From sequence record NC_061440.1: DNA of 64,000 nucleotides. One strand, given 5' to 3'. Position numbers and translations under genes: made by a program. The notes below the pieces were generated by a model. The model did not search any database. It saw only the letters and a program-made list of their open reading frames with translations, and was not told the DNA's origin. Each line of letters starts with the position of its first letter. The first letter of the stretch is position 1. This document shows, in pieces, positions 5,495 to 26,357 of this stretch.

Positions 5495-6316
5495 TTAATC
5501 TCCCTTAGCCTCGAACCAGAAGTCCCAGCCTACAGTATTGGTGCCGCTGGACTTAATGGTAAAGCCACCTAACAAGGCGTTCTCGTTCACTGCACTAGTA
5601 CCATCAAGGTTGTAGAGCGTAAACGTCTTAGCCTGGTTCGTTGCCGCATTCAAGAACGTAATCTGAATGCTTAGGCAGCGGTTGATGAATGGGCTGTTGA
5701 AGATAACGTGAATGGTGTCAGTAGTTGATTTGTTCACGATGCGACCCATGTTCTGGGTAAAGCCCGTGTTCATATCGCGGTTGCTACCAATCCATGCGTT
5801 TGGAATCACAGCACCTGTTACAGGGTCAAGTGCTTGCGCTGTTCGATACTCGTCGATAGCAGCATCACGCCCCGGGTTACCAGTAGGACCCGTCGCACCA
5901 GTAGGGCCGACTGCGCCCGTGTTACCAGTAGCGCCGACAGGGCCCGTGTTACCAGTAGGACCGTTACGGCCTCTTGGGCCACGAGGGCCAGGACAACCGT
6001 CTTCACCATCACGTCCGTCACGACCATCAGCACCAGGAAGACCGCGTAAGCCGTCTTTACCCTGCTTGCCTTCACGTCCTGACTTGAGCTGGTCGGCAGT
6101 AGGCAAACCAATAACGTTCGTCTGACTGCCGTCCGGCCAAATGAGTGTTAACGTACCTGTTGTCGTATCGAACTGAGCACCCTGAGCACCTGGAATCTTC
6201 GCAGCTTCTTGCGGACTGATAAACGCGACCGCAGTAGAAGTCTTCTTACCTAGCACTTTACCGACGGGGTCGGTGCCACCGTCGATGAGTGAAGGATTAA
6301 TGCGTGTTAAAGACAT
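5495..6316 (-). CDS. Collagen-like fibre protein with C-terminal gp53-like/lectin-like domain (273 aa)
   Basis: Continuous Gly-X-Y triplets (GREGKQG...GPTGNPG). C-terminal F.SPF...C....GGFTI...WFEAKG tail-fibre end module. Confidence 0.85.
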   Translation of the reverse strand: MSLTRINPSLIDGGTDPVGKVLGKKTSTAVAFISPQEAAKIPGAQGAQFDTTTGTLTLIWPDGSQTNVIGLPTADQLKSGREGKQGKDGLRGLPGADGRDGRDGEDGCPGPRGPRGRNGPTGNTGPVGATGNTGAVGPTGATGPTGNPGRDAAIDEYRTAQALDPVTGAVIPNAWIGSNRDMNTGFTQNMGRIVNKSTTDTIHVIFNSPFINRCLSIQITFLNAATNQAKTFTLYNLDGTSAVNENALLGGFTIKSSGTNTVGWDFWFEAKGD

Positions 6317-6539: not shown

Positions 6540-9416
6540 TTACTCGATCTCACTCGGTTCCCAGCACAGAATTGGGCGGCGCCATACTTGGAACACACCG
6601 ATAGGCGAAGCACGGCCAGAATCAATGAAGCAGTCCATAGTTGTACCACCAGAGTTACCGCTCTGCATAAGAGTTTGCAGGTTAGCAATCCAAGAAGCAC
6701 GTCCACCAGAGTCTGCCTCAAACAGTCCTTCCCACACCATATCAAAAGCACCGTTCCATGCGTTGAAGTGGTGAGAAGAATACGCACCATCACCGACTGA
6801 ACAAAGAACCATGTACTGGTAATCTTTGACGCAAGGAATAGCGTAGTTATTGCCGCGCGGAACTGCTGTACCGTTGTTATTAAAGATACACTCCCAGCCA
6901 GTACGATCAGCAGCACCAGTAGTTAAGAACAGAGGACGACGAATGATCATCATAATCCCGTTCTCACCGCCATTGTTGCTGGACTTCTCGCAGTACGCAT
7001 TACAACGTAAGGAACGGTCCACAGTGAATGTGGTTGAGTTTGAGAAGTCACGGCAGTAGTAGTTCGATCCCCACTTAGGCAGATATTCTGCTGGTGGTAC
7101 AAAGAAGTGACGCTCCGCAAGTTCGATCTCACCGTAACGGTCGTAAGCAAATACAATGTACTCGTAGCCCGCCTCAATCTGAATGTTGTGGCCTTGACTG
7201 CCGATACCATTCCACTTCCATACAACCTGCCAATCGTTCGTATCACGTTCAGGCATTTCGGTAATCAACTGATAAGGACGCTCATATACGTGCCACACCT
7301 TCCCTTCTTCTGTCGTGTTGATATACAACGAAGAAGGGTCATTGATGTTGCCGTTAGACGTACCACAATAAACTTTATGCGATGCACCAGCAGAGTTGTA
7401 GATAGTGCCTGAGCTTACAGACTGGAACATGTCCCAGTTCATCATCAGGTGCGAGGTACACATTTCATTCTGGCCACTACCATCAGAGGTTGTGAGCAGG
7501 TACTCGTTGAGGTCTTTGAACGCATAGCGCACATAGTTAGAGCCAGCACGGTTAACGCGGTGTACCCAGTCATGCGATTGAACTTTCGGCACAGGGAAGC
7601 AAGGGTTAGTGACAGACACGACGAAGTTTTTAGTTTCGTACATCGGCAGTTTCTTGAAGCGGTTATCACGAATCGTTACCGTGTGCTTCATGCCATATGT
7701 CTGCGCACCATCCATACCGCCCAGCACTTTGTAGTACGACTCATGCGCACTCTTGGTGTTTTCGTACAGACTAGTGATGCCAAGCCCAACGTTGCCGTCA
7801 CGGTCAGTGCCGCAGCAGAAGGGCACGTTACCTGAATCAAAGTCAAAGCCAACAGAGTAATAGCTGTCAGGTGAACTTGATTTAGGGCCCCAGTAGAGTT
7901 CGGTGTAAGCAGAACCTTCACCGATACCCGGCTCACCGAACACGCAGTATGCAGCACGATACACGTACTGACTGCCCTGGAACACACGGCGCGATGCACC
8001 AATGCGATACATAGCAGCAGGAAGGCCACCCTGAACACGGTTAACGTCAGCCGTATCATACGACACAACGAAGACATAACAGTCGGTGCCGATTGAGTTG
8101 AGGAACGCAGCACAGGCAGCAGCGTTAGTTGTACCTGGAGCTGTACCTTCGGCCGATGCGTGAATGTCAAACGAGCGGCGCTCAAGCAACGCAAGGTCAG
8201 ACTTACGAATCTTATAGACGTTCAGGCCACGCGTATCTCGGTACGTCACACCATTATAGACAGTGTAGCCATAGTCACCAGTGTCTAGGTAACGCTGATA
8301 ACCAACTACGTGCGAGAACAGTTTACTACGTGCTTGCAGCGACTGACCATTCTGATTCGACCAACTGACCGACACATCACCAGCAGCCATACGTGCTGCC
8401 CAGTCATCAGGCTTGTATGGGTATGTGGTAACATCGAAGTTCACACCGTACGCGGAGCCTGGCTCTACGCAGCATGGATTGCGATAGATGATTGGTGGAT
8501 CAATCACTATGTCATCAGGAATATCGACTTGACCGCAGTACAGTTGCTTCCACGTACCAGGCTGACCTCCGAGCGAACTAGGTCCCGCAGCAGGTGTTGT
8601 GTTGAACTGATAGATAGCAGACGTGCGATAGTTAATCTGATTGTGAAGCTGAGGAACGTTCGTCCACGCAATGTGATTACCGAACGAGTTAATGCTTTTG
8701 TCGTGTGCTGCAGGAGTCGAGACAACATAAGCCTGACCGTTACTGCGAATGCCGAGTGGGTTGAAGATAGCGTTGAAGTTAACGTTACCCTCGTAGGCAT
8801 TCTTCTGCAATACAATCAGGTGGACTCCGTTGCGGTGAGCTTCACGTAAAGCAGTGAGCATCGCTGTAGGCATACTCTGGTTAGTCGCAGACAACAGCAG
8901 CATGACACAACTGAACTGTTTGAAGTAACGGTAGTCGCCGTTGTACCCGTAAGCGCCTGCGTTAATCTCCTGCCAGCTATGCGCTAACATATCGAGAGGC
9001 ATACGCTGCATGTAACCAACGAGCTGGCCCCATGATTCCATTGCTGTGTCGTCGTTGACAGGAGCAAGGTCGGAGATGACCAACATCGTACTGCCGTTTG
9101 TAATGTTTGCGTTGAAGCCACGCTGGGTCAGCAAATGGCGGAACACACCCATGTTGTTGATAGACTTGTTACGGTAGTTGCCCATCCAGCCGTAGTTTGA
9201 ATCCACAAGAGGGCTACCGTCTCGAACAAATCGACCATTCATATAAACAGAGGCAAAGCCGCAGACGTATGCTTGCGCGTGTCCGTCCACTACGAACGAA
9301 GTAAAGCGGGAAGCATCTACCGCCATCGCATTAACAGCAGCCTCAGAGCCATTGCCGGGACTACCACTAAACACAGGAGTGATGCCTCGTGCGTACAGGC
9401 AACTTTGTTGCAGCAT
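6540..9416 (-). CDS. Fibre / receptor-binding protein with ILEI (PANDER-like) domain (958 aa)
   Basis: AAGGA SD. RGLNVYKIRK...RSFDIH...AAFLNSIG...VFVVSYD...YRAAYCVFG matches the ILEI carbohydrate-binding-like domain. Three aromatic-rich repeats near the C-terminus. Confidence 0.7.
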   Translation of the reverse strand: MLQQSCLYARGITPVFSGSPGNGSEAAVNAMAVDASRFTSFVVDGHAQAYVCGFASVYMNGRFVRDGSPLVDSNYGWMGNYRNKSINNMGVFRHLLTQRGFNANITNGSTMLVISDLAPVNDDTAMESWGQLVGYMQRMPLDMLAHSWQEINAGAYGYNGDYRYFKQFSCVMLLLSATNQSMPTAMLTALREAHRNGVHLIVLQKNAYEGNVNFNAIFNPLGIRSNGQAYVVSTPAAHDKSINSFGNHIAWTNVPQLHNQINYRTSAIYQFNTTPAAGPSSLGGQPGTWKQLYCGQVDIPDDIVIDPPIIYRNPCCVEPGSAYGVNFDVTTYPYKPDDWAARMAAGDVSVSWSNQNGQSLQARSKLFSHVVGYQRYLDTGDYGYTVYNGVTYRDTRGLNVYKIRKSDLALLERRSFDIHASAEGTAPGTTNAAACAAFLNSIGTDCYVFVVSYDTADVNRVQGGLPAAMYRIGASRRVFQGSQYVYRAAYCVFGEPGIGEGSAYTELYWGPKSSSPDSYYSVGFDFDSGNVPFCCGTDRDGNVGLGITSLYENTKSAHESYYKVLGGMDGAQTYGMKHTVTIRDNRFKKLPMYETKNFVVSVTNPCFPVPKVQSHDWVHRVNRAGSNYVRYAFKDLNEYLLTTSDGSGQNEMCTSHLMMNWDMFQSVSSGTIYNSAGASHKVYCGTSNGNINDPSSLYINTTEEGKVWHVYERPYQLITEMPERDTNDWQVVWKWNGIGSQGHNIQIEAGYEYIVFAYDRYGEIELAERHFFVPPAEYLPKWGSNYYCRDFSNSTTFTVDRSLRCNAYCEKSSNNGGENGIMMIIRRPLFLTTGAADRTGWECIFNNNGTAVPRGNNYAIPCVKDYQYMVLCSVGDGAYSSHHFNAWNGAFDMVWEGLFEADSGGRASWIANLQTLMQSGNSGGTTMDCFIDSGRASPIGVFQVWRRPILCWEPSEIE

Positions 9417-22904: not shown

Positions 22905-23194
22905 TAGCCAAATCTCACGTTAGAGCTACCGTTAGAAGCTGTGTCACCACAACTGTTTCCATCACCAGCACGTTGAGCGGGCTTGCCGTTAACACGCACA
23001 CTGGAGCTTGATGTTGCTTTACCAACATGCGGAGGTTTCTTAGGCTTCCAGTGTGGTTTATAGGCGTCACCGCTGCGAACGCTTCCCTTGCCGTTGACAA
23101 GCACATTCGTTGATGCCTGTGCTGGGACGACAGGGAAATAACCGCTGTGACCTGTAGACAGATCTGCGCCAAGTCGAATAGCTTTCTGACCCAT
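22904..23194 (-). CDS. PAAR-repeat spike-tip protein (T4 gp5.4-like, 96 aa)
   Basis: RLGAD.STGH, NVLVNGK...R.GD...H, VRVNGKPAQRAGD..SCG, GSSNV.FG. Confidence 0.9.
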   Translation of the reverse strand: MGQKAIRLGADLSTGHSGYFPVVPAQASTNVLVNGKGSVRSGDAYKPHWKPKKPPHVGKATSSSSVRVNGKPAQRAGDGNSCGDTASNGSSNVRFG

Positions 23195-23217
23195 GATTAT
23201 TCTCCTCTGTTAGACAC

Positions 23218-23225
23218 AAATTAGC
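23218..23225 (-). promoter_or_regulatory. GCTAATTT motif (candidate late promoter)
   Basis: Immediately after a terminator and 24 nt upstream of the PAAR start. Confidence 0.6.
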
Positions 23226-23239
23226 TTGTTAGGCCGCAG

Positions 23240-23270
23240 AAACAAAAACGGGCAGCCTCATGGCCACCCA
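23240..23270 (-). terminator. Rho-independent terminator closing the structured region
   Basis: GGGTGGCC-ATGA-GGCTGCCC-GTTTTTGTTT. Confidence 0.8.
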
Positions 23271-23303
23271 GTTTCTGTGCTTGGATTTGTGTCGCCCATT
23301 CCC

Positions 23304-23462
23304 TCACACCCGAAGCGAGTGCCCGACGGCTTTAGCCGATGAGCCGGAATGAATGTCCGAGAGTGACGATACACCTGGTATCGACAGCATGTGACTCTCG
23401 GGCCATGATAGCAATAGACCAAGCATCGCTATTGCCACCAGCGACACTAAGAACAAAAGCAT
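23304..23462 (-). CDS. Possible 52-aa hydrophobic peptide (MLLFLVSLVAIAMLGLLLSWPESH...)
   Basis: GAGGAG SD 7 nt before ATG and a 19-residue hydrophobic N-terminus. However, it lies within strongly paired RNA and may be incidental. Confidence 0.35.
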   Translation of the reverse strand: MLLFLVSLVAIAMLGLLLSWPESHMLSIPGVSSLSDIHSGSSAKAVGHSLRV

Positions 23463-23521
23463 GTTTCGCTCCTCGTGTCTTACTTTAAATAACTACGTTT
23501 GATCAACTGGTACTTTGTTCT

Positions 23522-23549
23522 GCTCGTCGCCCAACATCACTTGAGTATC
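23522..23549. repeat. 28-bp direct repeat, copy at 23522
   Basis: GCTCGTCGCCCAACATCACTTGAGTATC, identical to 23911-23938. Confidence 0.95.
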
Positions 23550-23910
23550 AGAACGTTTCTCTGTCTTTACCGCCTACGTTGCGGTTATACCGCGCACGAC
23601 ACTCACATATCAAGGGCACTCGGCGGAAAAGGTAAGTTCCGAATGTCCTAACAACATGAGTGAAGCGAAGGAGGTCCCGTATCGGTGATCTGCAGGGGTT
23701 CACGCACTTTTAACATTCGCTTCTTTGTGCATTAAATCTTTCGTGGACTCGAATGCCCTGCTAATCATTCCACTAAGATATTTCACACCCTATTGTGAAC
23801 GGGTCAAGCTATGGCAGCACGTCAGCACGGCAGGCAGCGGACACACTCCATTAAGCATTGTTAAGGGCAATGCTCAACAGGCTGTGAACAGCTTGGTCGG
23901 AATAGGTTTC

Positions 23911-23938
23911 GCTCGTCGCCCAACATCACTTGAGTATC
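23911..23938. repeat. 28-bp direct repeat, copy at 23911
   Basis: Identical to 23522-23549. Confidence 0.95.
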
Positions 23939-24524
23939 TCGACCTAAACTTTTACTCTCCACACGACTACAAGGAAGAATCGCGTTTCTGTGACCTGCGG
24001 ATGTTTATCACTCTCAGACTCTTGAGCCACTATCTGGAAGCTAACACGTTGAGTCGTCCGCTGGATGACGTGTTAGCTCTCCTCTCCTCGTCGTGCGAAG
24101 GCCAGAGTGGTAGCTGATGGATTGTCATGAAGTCCTGACAGGAGTCATCGCTTCCCAATGCACACAGGGTGAAAGCCTATGCACATCAGGCAGCGTCTGC
24201 TGCGATACTGCTATCCCCTTGAGAGTGGCCATAGCGTTGAGTTTGCGCTTCGCCAGTCTACGTGCCTGGAAGGTATCTGCCGTGCCTATGTCTGCATTCA
24301 GCATGGTTCCTTTGCTGGGCCTTTTGGGCGTCAGCGACAGAGCAGATATTCATCACGTGGGTGCCGGGGTTGTCCTCACGATTACAGAGCGAACTCAAAC
24401 CGGCTGGAGGCCCGTATGCTCAGGAATGCACATACGAGTTTACCAGAAGAACGGCCCCGCTATGGTAGCGTTCTTCCGAGACATACTGATATTACTATCT
24501 GCAATTTTTATTTACAGATTTTTC

Positions 24525-24587
24525 TTAACCTTCGCCCCAACCACAAGAAGCAGGTTTACCGTCACCGTAACCGATTTTAAACAGCAT
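24525..24587 (-). CDS. Possible 20-aa sORF MLFKIGYGDGKPASCGWGEG
   Basis: TAAGGA SD overlaps the upstream stop, with ATG 7 nt later. Confidence 0.25.
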   Translation of the reverse strand: MLFKIGYGDGKPASCGWGEG

Positions 24588-24596
24588 AGTTAGTCC

Positions 24597-26357
24597 TTAG
24601 AACGCTTTACGTTCGATGTTGGAGTAGTACGTGTCATATGGTTCGCTATACAGCTCAGGGCCGCGCTGCGCACGAATGGTCACGTAACCAGTGTGTCGGT
24701 TGAACGCGATGATTTCGACTGTAGGCTGTTTCGGCTTGATGGTCGAATAAATCGGAGCGTTCATGGTTGGTTCGTCTGTCTGAATCTTATTTACAGATTG
24801 CAGAGCAGCACCAGACAGCGTAGGCAGATTGAATCTGATTTCCGCACGTTTCTGGCCGAACGCGATTTTGATTACACCAGCAGGAAGCTCAACGCCGTTC
24901 TGTTTCAGATACGCACCAATGCGACGAGCGATACCAGTCAACTGATCGCGTGTGCGAGGGTCGAATGTACCTTCGAAGCTGATTGCTTCTGCTGGCTGGC
25001 GCACGGACAGATGCAGACCTGTGTTGAAATAGCCTTCGGTCAGCAGGCGCAGCACTTCCTTCACGACTTCTTTCGTGTTGGATTTGATAGCAGCGATTTT
25101 GAGTTCAGGCACGTCAACCTTAATCGGGTCACGCAGTTCGGTCTGGTTGTCCATGTAGCCGAGTGATACGTGTTTCGCTTTGGTGTACGTGTGCTGCAAC
25201 ACACCAGTAGCGCGAATCAATACAGAGCCAGACTTCGATTGATCATACAGTTCGTCGCTGGTGGTTGTGCTAAACAGGTAATAGTCTGTAGGCACTGCCA
25301 TACGATTAACCGCTTCAACTGCTTTCGTCTGTACTTCTTTTACAGTTTTACCGAAGACAACACGACTACGGTTAGGCTGTGCTGCCGAGACAGGGAAGAA
25401 GGCGCCGTATACAACCTGCACGTTCTTCTGAATAGGCTTGGAAGAGTTTACCTTGATACCGCCTTGCAGCGGAGGTAGCTTCACGCCCACCAGCTTACCG
25501 TTAACGATAGCTTTGTTTGCTACAACAGGCTTGAGGCCAGACAGCAGTTTCTGCAACTCAGCGCCATCAAGAATCTTCTCAAGCGGAACAGCAAGGTTCT
25601 GCGGCAGATAGTGTTTCTTGCGGAACGAGTAGATAACTGTGTCTTTCTTGATCTGCAAAGGCGTAGCCATGTTGCGACCAATCTGACCTACAGGCTGGAA
25701 CGTGTTCTTCTTGTCATCCGCAATGGTACCGAATGCTTTCGTGAACTCAGACTGTCCGATGATGTTAGCCACACGCTGGTGACCACGAACGATAAACACG
25801 ATCTTCGGTTCGTCTTTCAGGCGCAGTTCGTAACGGTCACGGTTCAGATAAACCATGCTGTACTTATCGCCTTTCTCCAGCTCAAGGTCATACTCATCGT
25901 TGGCGTCATCAACCACGACTTTCTTACCTTGATACGTTGCGTACTGACGAGCAGCAGACTCGGAGGCAATCTCCATAGCCTTACCAGTATTCGACAGCGC
26001 AACAGCAAAGTCAGTTACAGCAGGCATCAGATCAACAGACGATGCAACCGCGTAGCTGTTACGGCGTTCACCGAGATGCAGATGCACGGCACTTGAAGCA
26101 GACATGAATACAGTGTTACCTGTGTCTTCATGCTTACCTGCAAAGTTCATACCGCTAATGCGTTCGATGATGTTGGCGCTTAACGCAGGAAACGCGATAT
26201 CGCTACCAGCAGTGAAGTCAAAAATCTCACCGTGACGCCATGCGTATGCCACGTTGTTCGAGCTAAGACCGACAAACGCATCGCCGATCTGCTTAACAGT
26301 CATCGGCATGATACTCAAGTCACGAATGACCGAGTTTTGCTTTTGAATAAGATTCAT
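24597..26357 (-). CDS. Hypothetical protein with SH3-like paralogous domain, probable internal head protein (586 aa)
   Basis: Contains IASESAARQ-YATYQG...LEKGDKYSM...YEL..KDEP..VF, the module shared with three other proteins in the window. Confidence 0.7.
   Translation of the reverse strand: MNLIQKQNSVIRDLSIMPMTVKQIGDAFVGLSSNNVAYAWRHGEIFDFTAGSDIAFPALSANIIERISGMNFAGKHEDTGNTVFMSASSAVHLHLGERRNSYAVASSVDLMPAVTDFAVALSNTGKAMEIASESAARQYATYQGKKVVVDDANDEYDLELEKGDKYSMVYLNRDRYELRLKDEPKIVFIVRGHQRVANIIGQSEFTKAFGTIADDKKNTFQPVGQIGRNMATPLQIKKDTVIYSFRKKHYLPQNLAVPLEKILDGAELQKLLSGLKPVVANKAIVNGKLVGVKLPPLQGGIKVNSSKPIQKNVQVVYGAFFPVSAAQPNRSRVVFGKTVKEVQTKAVEAVNRMAVPTDYYLFSTTTSDELYDQSKSGSVLIRATGVLQHTYTKAKHVSLGYMDNQTELRDPIKVDVPELKIAAIKSNTKEVVKEVLRLLTEGYFNTGLHLSVRQPAEAISFEGTFDPRTRDQLTGIARRIGAYLKQNGVELPAGVIKIAFGQKRAEIRFNLPTLSGAALQSVNKIQTDEPTMNAPIYSTIKPKQPTVEIIAFNRHTGYVTIRAQRGPELYSEPYDTYYSNIERKAF

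Follow-up and report, generated by a model that had tools for sequence, protein, structure and literature searches.

Hairpins that recur within one RNA to bind a protein are familiar from several systems: the operators bound by RNA-phage coat proteins, which have a bulged A and a loop A, the GGA hairpins of CsrB and RsmB, and the anticodon-like pair of the E. coli thrS operator. The usual pattern of protein-binding hairpins is that fixed unpaired bases are read sequence-specifically on a scaffold whose own sequence is free. Large structured RNAs of uncharacterised function are, to our knowledge, rare, and we know of none yet described for jumbo phages of Enterobacterales, nor of any repeated 28-nt module described for the large RNAs GOLLD, ROOL or OLE. 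These three RNAs form oligomers through loop contacts (PMC12286853), and kink-turns (k-turns) are known as protein-binding and architectural elements in large RNAs (PMC5061560, PMC9723947). Here we report, on the basis of comparative sequence analysis, that a 28-nt repeat in an Erwinia phage is the local form of a hairpin module. The module is carried by a large RNA, not described before, that occurs in jumbo phages of Erwinia and Dickeya and is predicted to be highly structured.

The repeat lies in a 64-kb window (the whole stretch of DNA analysed) from Erwinia phage pEa_SNUABM_22 (MZ443785, Alexandravirus, 265 kb). An earlier note on this DNA had claimed that a 28-nt motif is present exactly twice on the minus strand, 389 nt apart, and exact and 3-mismatch searches bear out this count. 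The 28-mer GATACTCAAGTGATGTTGGGCGACGAGC has exactly two exact copies at that spacing (copies A and B, Table 1), a tolerance of up to three mismatches adds no third copy, and 0 of 100 dinucleotide-preserving shuffles yield even one match. Scanning the 265-kb genome with the covariance models R1 and R2 also returned nothing beyond these two copies. The direct repeat around the 28-mer extends to 33 nt with 94% identity, while larger tandem domain repeats around the hairpins are absent; the hairpin alone repeats. The closing stems are as the note had described them: GUUCUG/CAGAAC for copy B, where the 28-mer begins with the inner G of this stem and ends with its inner C, and AGGU/ACCU for copy A, where a CGA/GAA internal loop in which tandem G.A pairs are possible sits between this stem and the 28-mer. 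The note had also found the motif unlike the enterobacterial type I-E and I-F CRISPR repeats, which is consistent with two copies 389 nt apart and no array; this arrangement does not match a CRISPR repeat or a solitary repeat mimic (repeats of 28-37 nt, spacers of ~30-40 nt).

Both copies fall within one stretch of ~1.25-1.4 kb that holds no credible gene. It is flanked on one side by a gene for a 586-aa protein and on the other by baseplate genes (PAAR, gp25-like and gp6-like); the minus strand encodes all of them. The stretch is kept at 74-100% identity in 34 phage records, where it is unannotated or inconsistently annotated. The consensus fold computed with RNAalifold from 14 sequences contains 321 pairs, 93 of them with compensatory changes. 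Its consensus energy is -325 kcal/mol for the minus strand versus -211 kcal/mol for the reverse complement, and this far stronger fold of the minus strand indicates that the structure belongs to an RNA and not to the DNA. The same evidence bears on whether the repeat might be a DNA-level element, either direct repeats used in recombination or replication or the operator of a protein that binds double-stranded DNA. A direct repeat of 28-33 nt with its copies 389 bp apart would suit such an element, but compensatory changes preserve a hairpin within one strand, G-U pairs are confined to the minus strand and the other strand folds much more weakly. Moreover, the repeat flanks are unrelated, and the intervening segment is kept in all relatives with no signs of deletion. 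We consider an element acting in the DNA very unlikely and this reading already largely refuted.

Table 1. Positions within the 64-kb window of the hairpins, the predicted carrier RNA and its associated signals.
Feature	Position	Strand	Remarks
Predicted carrier transcript, ~1.25-kb structured RNA with both hairpins, small ORF and terminator	23240-24500	-	RNAalifold
Phage promoter-like motif AATCTGTAAATA	24509-24520	-	Just upstream of the carrier RNA
Hairpin A including closing stem AGGU/ACCU	23904-23945	-	Closing stem covaries
Copy A, 28-nt core	23911-23938	-	Exact match; R1 57.6 bits, R2 40.7 bits
13-bp hairpin with invariant 7-nt loop CCCUUAA (23861-23867)	23848-23880	-	Candidate kissing partner of loop A GGGC
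Hairpin B including closing stem GUUCUG/CAGAAC	23517-23554	-	Closing stem covaries
Copy B, 28-nt core	23522-23549	-	Exact match; R1 63.1 bits, R2 48.8 bits
Small ORF, 52 aa, hydrophobic N-terminus	23304-23462	-	Same predicted transcript, ~55 nt to the 3' side of hairpin B
Intrinsic terminator, stem followed by U run	23249-23270	-	Terminator scan; stem kept with G-C/G-U changes

The core of the promoter-like motif, CTGTAAATA, has 28 exact sites genome-wide, each on the gene strand of its own block, and their 5' flank is conserved as A-A-T. Most of them precede a ribosome-binding site and start codon by 20-50 nt. The full motif AATCTGTAAATA, which is reminiscent of the T4 late promoter TATAAATA, is probably the phage's own promoter, of the late type. 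After the two CTGTAAATA sites at 24509 and 24788, no further consensus site precedes the baseplate and fibre genes, which fill ~43 kb of the minus strand, so the carrier RNA may be the leader of a very long late operon, with the terminator at the leader's end. Transcription of the carrier RNA is itself a prediction. Short contigs of diverged relatives were found in two wastewater metatranscriptome runs and in two further runs that are labelled as RNA and are probably DNA, and we do not count these contigs as proof of transcription. In three contigs that span copy A, none of the differences listed falls inside the 28-mer, and the adjoining stem carries many.

The 52-aa ORF keeps its frame and stop codon in the relatives AD1 and DIV (the latter a divergent metagenomic relative merged from two overlapping contigs), and a conserved hairpin (23443-23479) encloses both its ribosome-binding site and its start codon. 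A 16-nt deletion breaks the frame in pEa_SNUABM_35 and pEa_SNUABM_2, and the 3' half of the ORF overlaps covarying hairpins with GAAA and UUCG loops. Elsewhere in the carrier RNA, an invariant ACCUCCUU (23668-23675, minus strand), which follows GAUCACC and is also present in the divergent relative, is similar to the anti-Shine-Dalgarno sequence at the 16S rRNA 3' end and could pair with ribosome-binding sites in cis or in trans. Two alignment columns, 133 (~24395, C-to-U) and 174 (~24360, G-to-A; both on the minus strand), change jointly in pEa_SNUABM_30 and in Y3-like and divergent relatives. The joint change turns GCCGG/CCGGC into GCUGG/CCAGC, which suggests a helix or pseudoknot absent from the RNAalifold drawing.

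When the whole 64-kb window was searched against Rfam 15 at the gathering score, no family was matched, including GOLLD, ROOL, OLE, raiA, group I/II introns, RNase P, tmRNA and riboswitches, and a literature search returned nothing on this locus. The carrier RNA is nevertheless similar to GOLLD, ROOL and OLE in being large, densely structured, phage-borne and of uncharacterised function. A membrane-protein gene shares the transcript of OLE, and here a small hydrophobic ORF comes after the RNA. It is unlike them in its lack of an Rfam match, in its Enterobacterales jumbo-phage hosts and in its apparent setting as a baseplate operon leader.

In the fold of the repeated hairpin, a closing stem whose sequence is free leads to a bulge of three nucleotides, A-N-A, on the 5' side; beyond it come the 4-bp stem CUCA/CGAG and the 15-nt loop AGUGAUGUUGGGCGA. 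In copy A, these parts correspond to G1, the bulge A2-U3-A4, the stem C5-A8/C24-G27, the loop A9-A23 and C28. The Alexandravirus relatives compared keep both copies of the motif at the homologous loci, conservation on which the earlier note had made its interpretation depend. Among 15 distinct hairpins, taken from both positions in ten phages, the 5' bulge is AUA or AAA, 87.8% of cells are paired and changes on both sides are seen in 8 of 12 pairs. This covariation is reached by 0 of 500 shuffles, slid controls all collapse, and the outcome is the same with 19 distinct hairpins. Copy A is almost unchanged across the 14 Alexandravirus-type RNAs; copy B in relatives carries compensatory changes within the 4-bp stem. 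The changes recorded in this stem convert U6:A26 to C:G, C7:G25 to A:U or U:A, and A8.C24 to U:A or A:U.

These substitutions discriminate between the two internal folds that the earlier note had offered. Pairing of CUC with GAG is supported by the compensatory changes, and CUCA/CGAG covaries, whereas the CUCAA/UUGGG fold is rejected, as it is broken by A8-to-U and C7-to-A in copy B; RNAalifold draws CUCAA/UUGGG for copy A, where no base varies. The note's view of a conserved core on interchangeable stems holds as well: the bulge and loop are fixed, the closing stems covary freely and are wholly exchanged between relatives, for example from GUUCUG/CAGAAC to GAAUUG/CAAUUC. Variants of the hairpin A closing stem are AGGU/ACCU, GUAGA/UCUAC, GCAGA/UCUGC and GAUUG/CAAUC, and those of hairpin B include, besides GAAUUG/CAAUUC, also GAAUCG/CGAUUC, GAGUUG/CAACUC and GACAGCG/CGCAGUC. 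One degenerate instance was seen in Erwinia phage Alexandra, where copy B (L002:3988-4016) reads AGUGGAGUUUAGGCGA, with A13-to-G, one U inserted and G18-to-A; the stems of this copy are intact, and copy A of the same phage is unaltered.

More distant relatives were gathered through a profile search with the neighbouring 586-aa protein, whose homologues are 42-73% identical. This profile brought in the pEa_SNUABM_7 group, Erwinia phage Y3, the Dickeya phages JA29 and JA11/JA33 and four metagenomic contigs, and all the phages gathered in this way have a long gap at the same place. The equivalent gap measures up to ~2.3 kb in distant relatives, as against the ~1.25-kb RNA of pEa_SNUABM_22. All module copies lie within this gap on the gene strand, with none elsewhere in the loci. 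In the distant RNAs the module is the top direct repeat, and the remaining RNA is barely alignable. The distant form of the hairpin consists of a closing stem, AGA, CCUG, YYYYAGUKGGGARA, CGGG and the closing stem again.

Across 21 instances from nine lineages (a small number of independent lineages, with hairpins compared from part of the 34 Alexandravirus records), A2, A4, C5:G27, A13 and G19 in the numbering of the 28-mer are invariant, and U11, G15, G18, G20, A23 and G25 are kept in at least 90% of instances. Every stem pair except one varies, while the bulge and loop bases are fixed. The helices of this alignment have a covariation score of 0.742 versus 0.257 in shuffles; ten distant instances were chosen with a pattern demanding pairing, so that the paired fraction on the 21-instance alignment leans towards structure, a bias of which the statistics on 15 and 19 hairpins are free. 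Model R2 recovered two instances outside its training set (32.8 and 23.7 bits). We define the module as a closing stem, an A-N-A bulge, a 4-bp stem C-Y-Y-N/N-G-R-G and a loop of 14-15 nt with A13, G15, G18-G20 and A23, and both copies in the window fit this definition.

We also looked for the module outside these phages. A degenerate 28-nt pattern retrieves the family's own members from viral contigs. In the prokaryote genomes covered by a search of the kind that the earlier note had proposed for hosts, no credible copy appeared: E. coli genomes contain no match, and the same pattern gave one match in 185,579 prokaryote species genomes, in an unrelated actinomycete MAG, where by our own estimate about one chance match is expected. 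A metagenome scan with a conserved 20-nt pattern of the RNA yielded two true relatives. Six other metagenome matches to this pattern were rejected as they have no wider similarity, the five inspected looking like chance matches in coding sequence, and four exact 16-17-mer matches in viral contigs were attributed to chance.

The gaps of the distant relatives have features of their own. The promoter motif occurs twice in them, ~1.7 kb apart (L078:5283-5303 and 6982-7002; L075:5325-5339 and 7064-7078), and a conserved 103-aa ORF is present (L073 6013-6324, L076 6280-6591, L078 7113-7424); the RNA in these relatives may be a separate transcription unit of ~1 kb. The distant RNAs also contain a second kind of hairpin that shows AGUUGGGAA without the A-N-A bulge, in the form UGUC-GGGAAAGUUGGGAA-GACA (L073 ~5920-5950, L076 ~6195-6225, L077 ~6270-6300), so that the display of the G-rich loop sequence is not limited to a single structural frame.

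The distant homologues are informative about the resemblance of the module to k-turn hairpins such as the U4 snRNA 5' stem-loop, box C/D RNAs and the OLE k-turn, with which the Alexandravirus-type copies share a Watson-Crick stem, a 3-nt unpaired stretch and GA...GA. If these copies formed a k-turn, with CUCA/CGAG as the C helix, A9-G10-U11 as the bulge and the pairs G12.A23 and A13.G22, a reading with which their sequences are compatible, the hairpin would be a purely architectural bend in the helix. The 4-bp covarying stem does provide a Watson-Crick C helix 5' of the bulge, and G12, A13 and A23 are invariant in nearly all Alexandravirus-type copies. In addition, the sole Rfam match at E up to 10 in 23100-24700, at chance level, is a box C/D RNA, sR17, matched through GUGAUG (15.7 bits against a gathering score of 36, E = 1), and in OLE RNA protein recognition proceeds via a k-turn (PMC9723947). 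However, in the modules of Y3, the Dickeya JA phages and the metagenomic relatives, position 12 is C or U and position 22 is free to vary, and the tandem G.A pairs are therefore not conserved in the module. Nor are there Watson-Crick pairs beyond G.A (3b.3n would be U.C and 4b.4n G.G) or an extended non-canonical helix, and the pair next to the loop, or k-turn bulge, is A.C in about half of the copies. The module moreover has an extra invariant A-N-A bulge and a fixed G-rich loop, neither of which k-turns need, and an L7Ae-family gene is absent from the phage genome. A box C/D small RNA was rejected, with sR17 below its gathering score and the D-box position reading GCGA instead of CUGA. A k-turn was demoted along with it, given the distant homologues without the G.A/A.G signature, and we now regard this architectural role as improbable.

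Another resemblance, to the tRNA D-arm, lies in the 4-bp stem and in the distant-type loop core AGUUGGGA, which reads like the D-arm A14-R15-Y16-Y17-G18-G19-N-A21. The loop of the module is 6-7 nt longer, however, the Alexandravirus-type core is UGUUGGGC, and other tRNA arms are missing; ARAGORN found no tRNA or tmRNA genes in 23000-24800.

Copy number differs between lineages. Two copies are present in Alexandravirus, the pEa_SNUABM_7 group, Erwinia phage Y3 and Dickeya phage JA29, and the metagenomic relatives have two, two and three copies. The single copies in JA11/JA33 and in DIV (which is without hairpin A), like the three copies in one metagenomic relative, show that two copies are not obligatory. 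The spacing between copies is fairly regular, 271-506 nt, in all lineages with at least two of them. Where Y3 has its own loop type at position A, Alexandravirus has the B-type loop instead. Identical hairpins at such regular spacing could serve RNA processing, with a structure-specific endoribonuclease cutting both and freeing a fragment of ~390 nt, and repeated hairpins do mark processing sites in CRISPR arrays. Yet single-copy lineages exist, and the copies and the segment between them belong to a single covarying fold, whose long-range helices reach across the hairpins, which makes a processing role quite improbable.

Our leaning, which we hold tentatively, is that all copies are recognised by a partner that they share, probably a protein. 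This partner would act in trans and would most likely come from the phage or the host proteome; it would engage each copy and would read the bulged adenines and the G-rich loop directly, with the stems acting only as a scaffold. Several copies would then make the RNA multivalent, able to assemble or sequester several partner molecules late in infection. That the unpaired bases are what the partner reads we infer from the free stems and the fixed bulge and loop. Like known repeated protein-binding hairpins, the module combines fixed unpaired bases on free stems with several copies per RNA and a varying copy number. It is unlike them in that it has no sequence resemblance to them and far fewer copies than CsrB, and in that it sits in a folded RNA of ~1.25 kb (in pEa_SNUABM_22), in contrast to a short operator or a flexible sponge.

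The neighbouring genes, which are structural or uncharacterised, yielded no partner protein. The 586-aa neighbour was considered as an RNA binder; it has a KMPT-N domain only, with no KTSC domain and no relative of solved structure. Nor does loop invariance by itself point to a protein, since many other loops of the carrier RNA are as invariant as the hairpin loops in the 14-sequence alignment. The comparison of copies speaks for a common partner: as their number and position vary and a Y3-type loop is swapped for a B-type loop, the copies look interchangeable, which accords better with a single shared partner than with a pair of distinct, fixed contacts within the molecule.

One observation that counts against a protein is the co-occurrence of hairpin A with a loop bearing CCC, which favours an RNA-RNA contact for copy A. 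More generally, the G-rich loops might dock onto RNA through kissing or loop-receptor contacts, within one RNA or between RNAs, and so aid folding or oligomerisation. The carrier RNA is large and densely structured with many invariant loops, and RNA-only oligomers are known for large bacterial and phage RNAs (PMC12286853). The GGGC of loop A can pair with GCCC of the CCCUUAA loop in the adjoining hairpin, whose stem covaries while its loop is invariant across 14 sequences. Both elements are kept in the pEa_SNUABM_7 group, where CCC is retained and UCGGG/CCCGA is on offer. DIV, which is without hairpin A, has a UUCG tetraloop on the same 13-bp stem, and Y3 differs at both places: position A carries another type of loop, and the loop next to it reads AAUGUCCGA. 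One evolutionary event could, however, explain the co-occurrence of hairpin A and the CCC loop, so this lead is suggestive only, and U14-to-A and U17-to-C in the loop are without a matching change in the CCCUUAA loop.

For copy B and for the distant copies, no candidate receptor was found. The carrier RNA holds no loop complement of at least 6 nt that is conserved across the family, and when perfect 6-mer complements of each loop were counted in the RNA that carries it, 18 of 19 comparisons gave roughly the number expected from shuffles; one L075 loop stood apart, with 14 complements observed versus 4.3 expected. No alignment column covaries with the variable loop position 14. Identical loops in differing contexts would need repeated receptors, and none was seen in direct-repeat searches; together with the interchangeable look of the copies and the single-copy lineages, this favours a trans-acting partner over RNA-RNA docking, its main rival, which we consider possible and the less probable of the two. 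The earlier note had read the repeat as the signature of a repeated protein-binding aptamer or an RNA-RNA docking module. Its repeated module stands, with one to three copies per RNA, while the searches brought up no partner protein, conserved complement or evidence of oligomerisation. In one further observation, two non-sister phages, pEa_SNUABM_2 and pEa_SNUABM_3, share G22-to-A in loop B (alignment column 1068, ~23528, minus strand) and a G-to-A in GACGUGCUGCC (column 763, ~23814, minus strand) that breaks a predicted C-G pair. This joint change could reflect a tertiary contact, or chance, as only two events are involved.

A more speculative and rather unlikely extension is that the hairpins give valency to a new phage particle, either a ribonucleoprotein or one made of RNA alone, that forms late in infection. 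The one to three identical loops would join the RNA to copies of itself or to a phage protein in a defined higher-order complex, comparable to the ROOL and GOLLD cages or the membrane-bound OLE particle. Such a particle might have a link with the small hydrophobic protein encoded on the same predicted transcript, or with the regulation of the baseplate/tail-fibre operon that lies downstream.

The module is the one element of the carrier RNA that is recognisable throughout the clade, from Alexandravirus to the Dickeya JA phages. This holds even where sequence comparison can hardly detect the remainder of the RNA, which makes the module the best handle with which to search for more members and to pull down the partner. 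It also permits clean loss-of-function mutants in which the global fold is left intact. Should the partner be a protein, the module and its binder would constitute a novel pair for recognition between RNA and protein; should the loops dock onto RNA, they would represent a new tertiary or quaternary motif.
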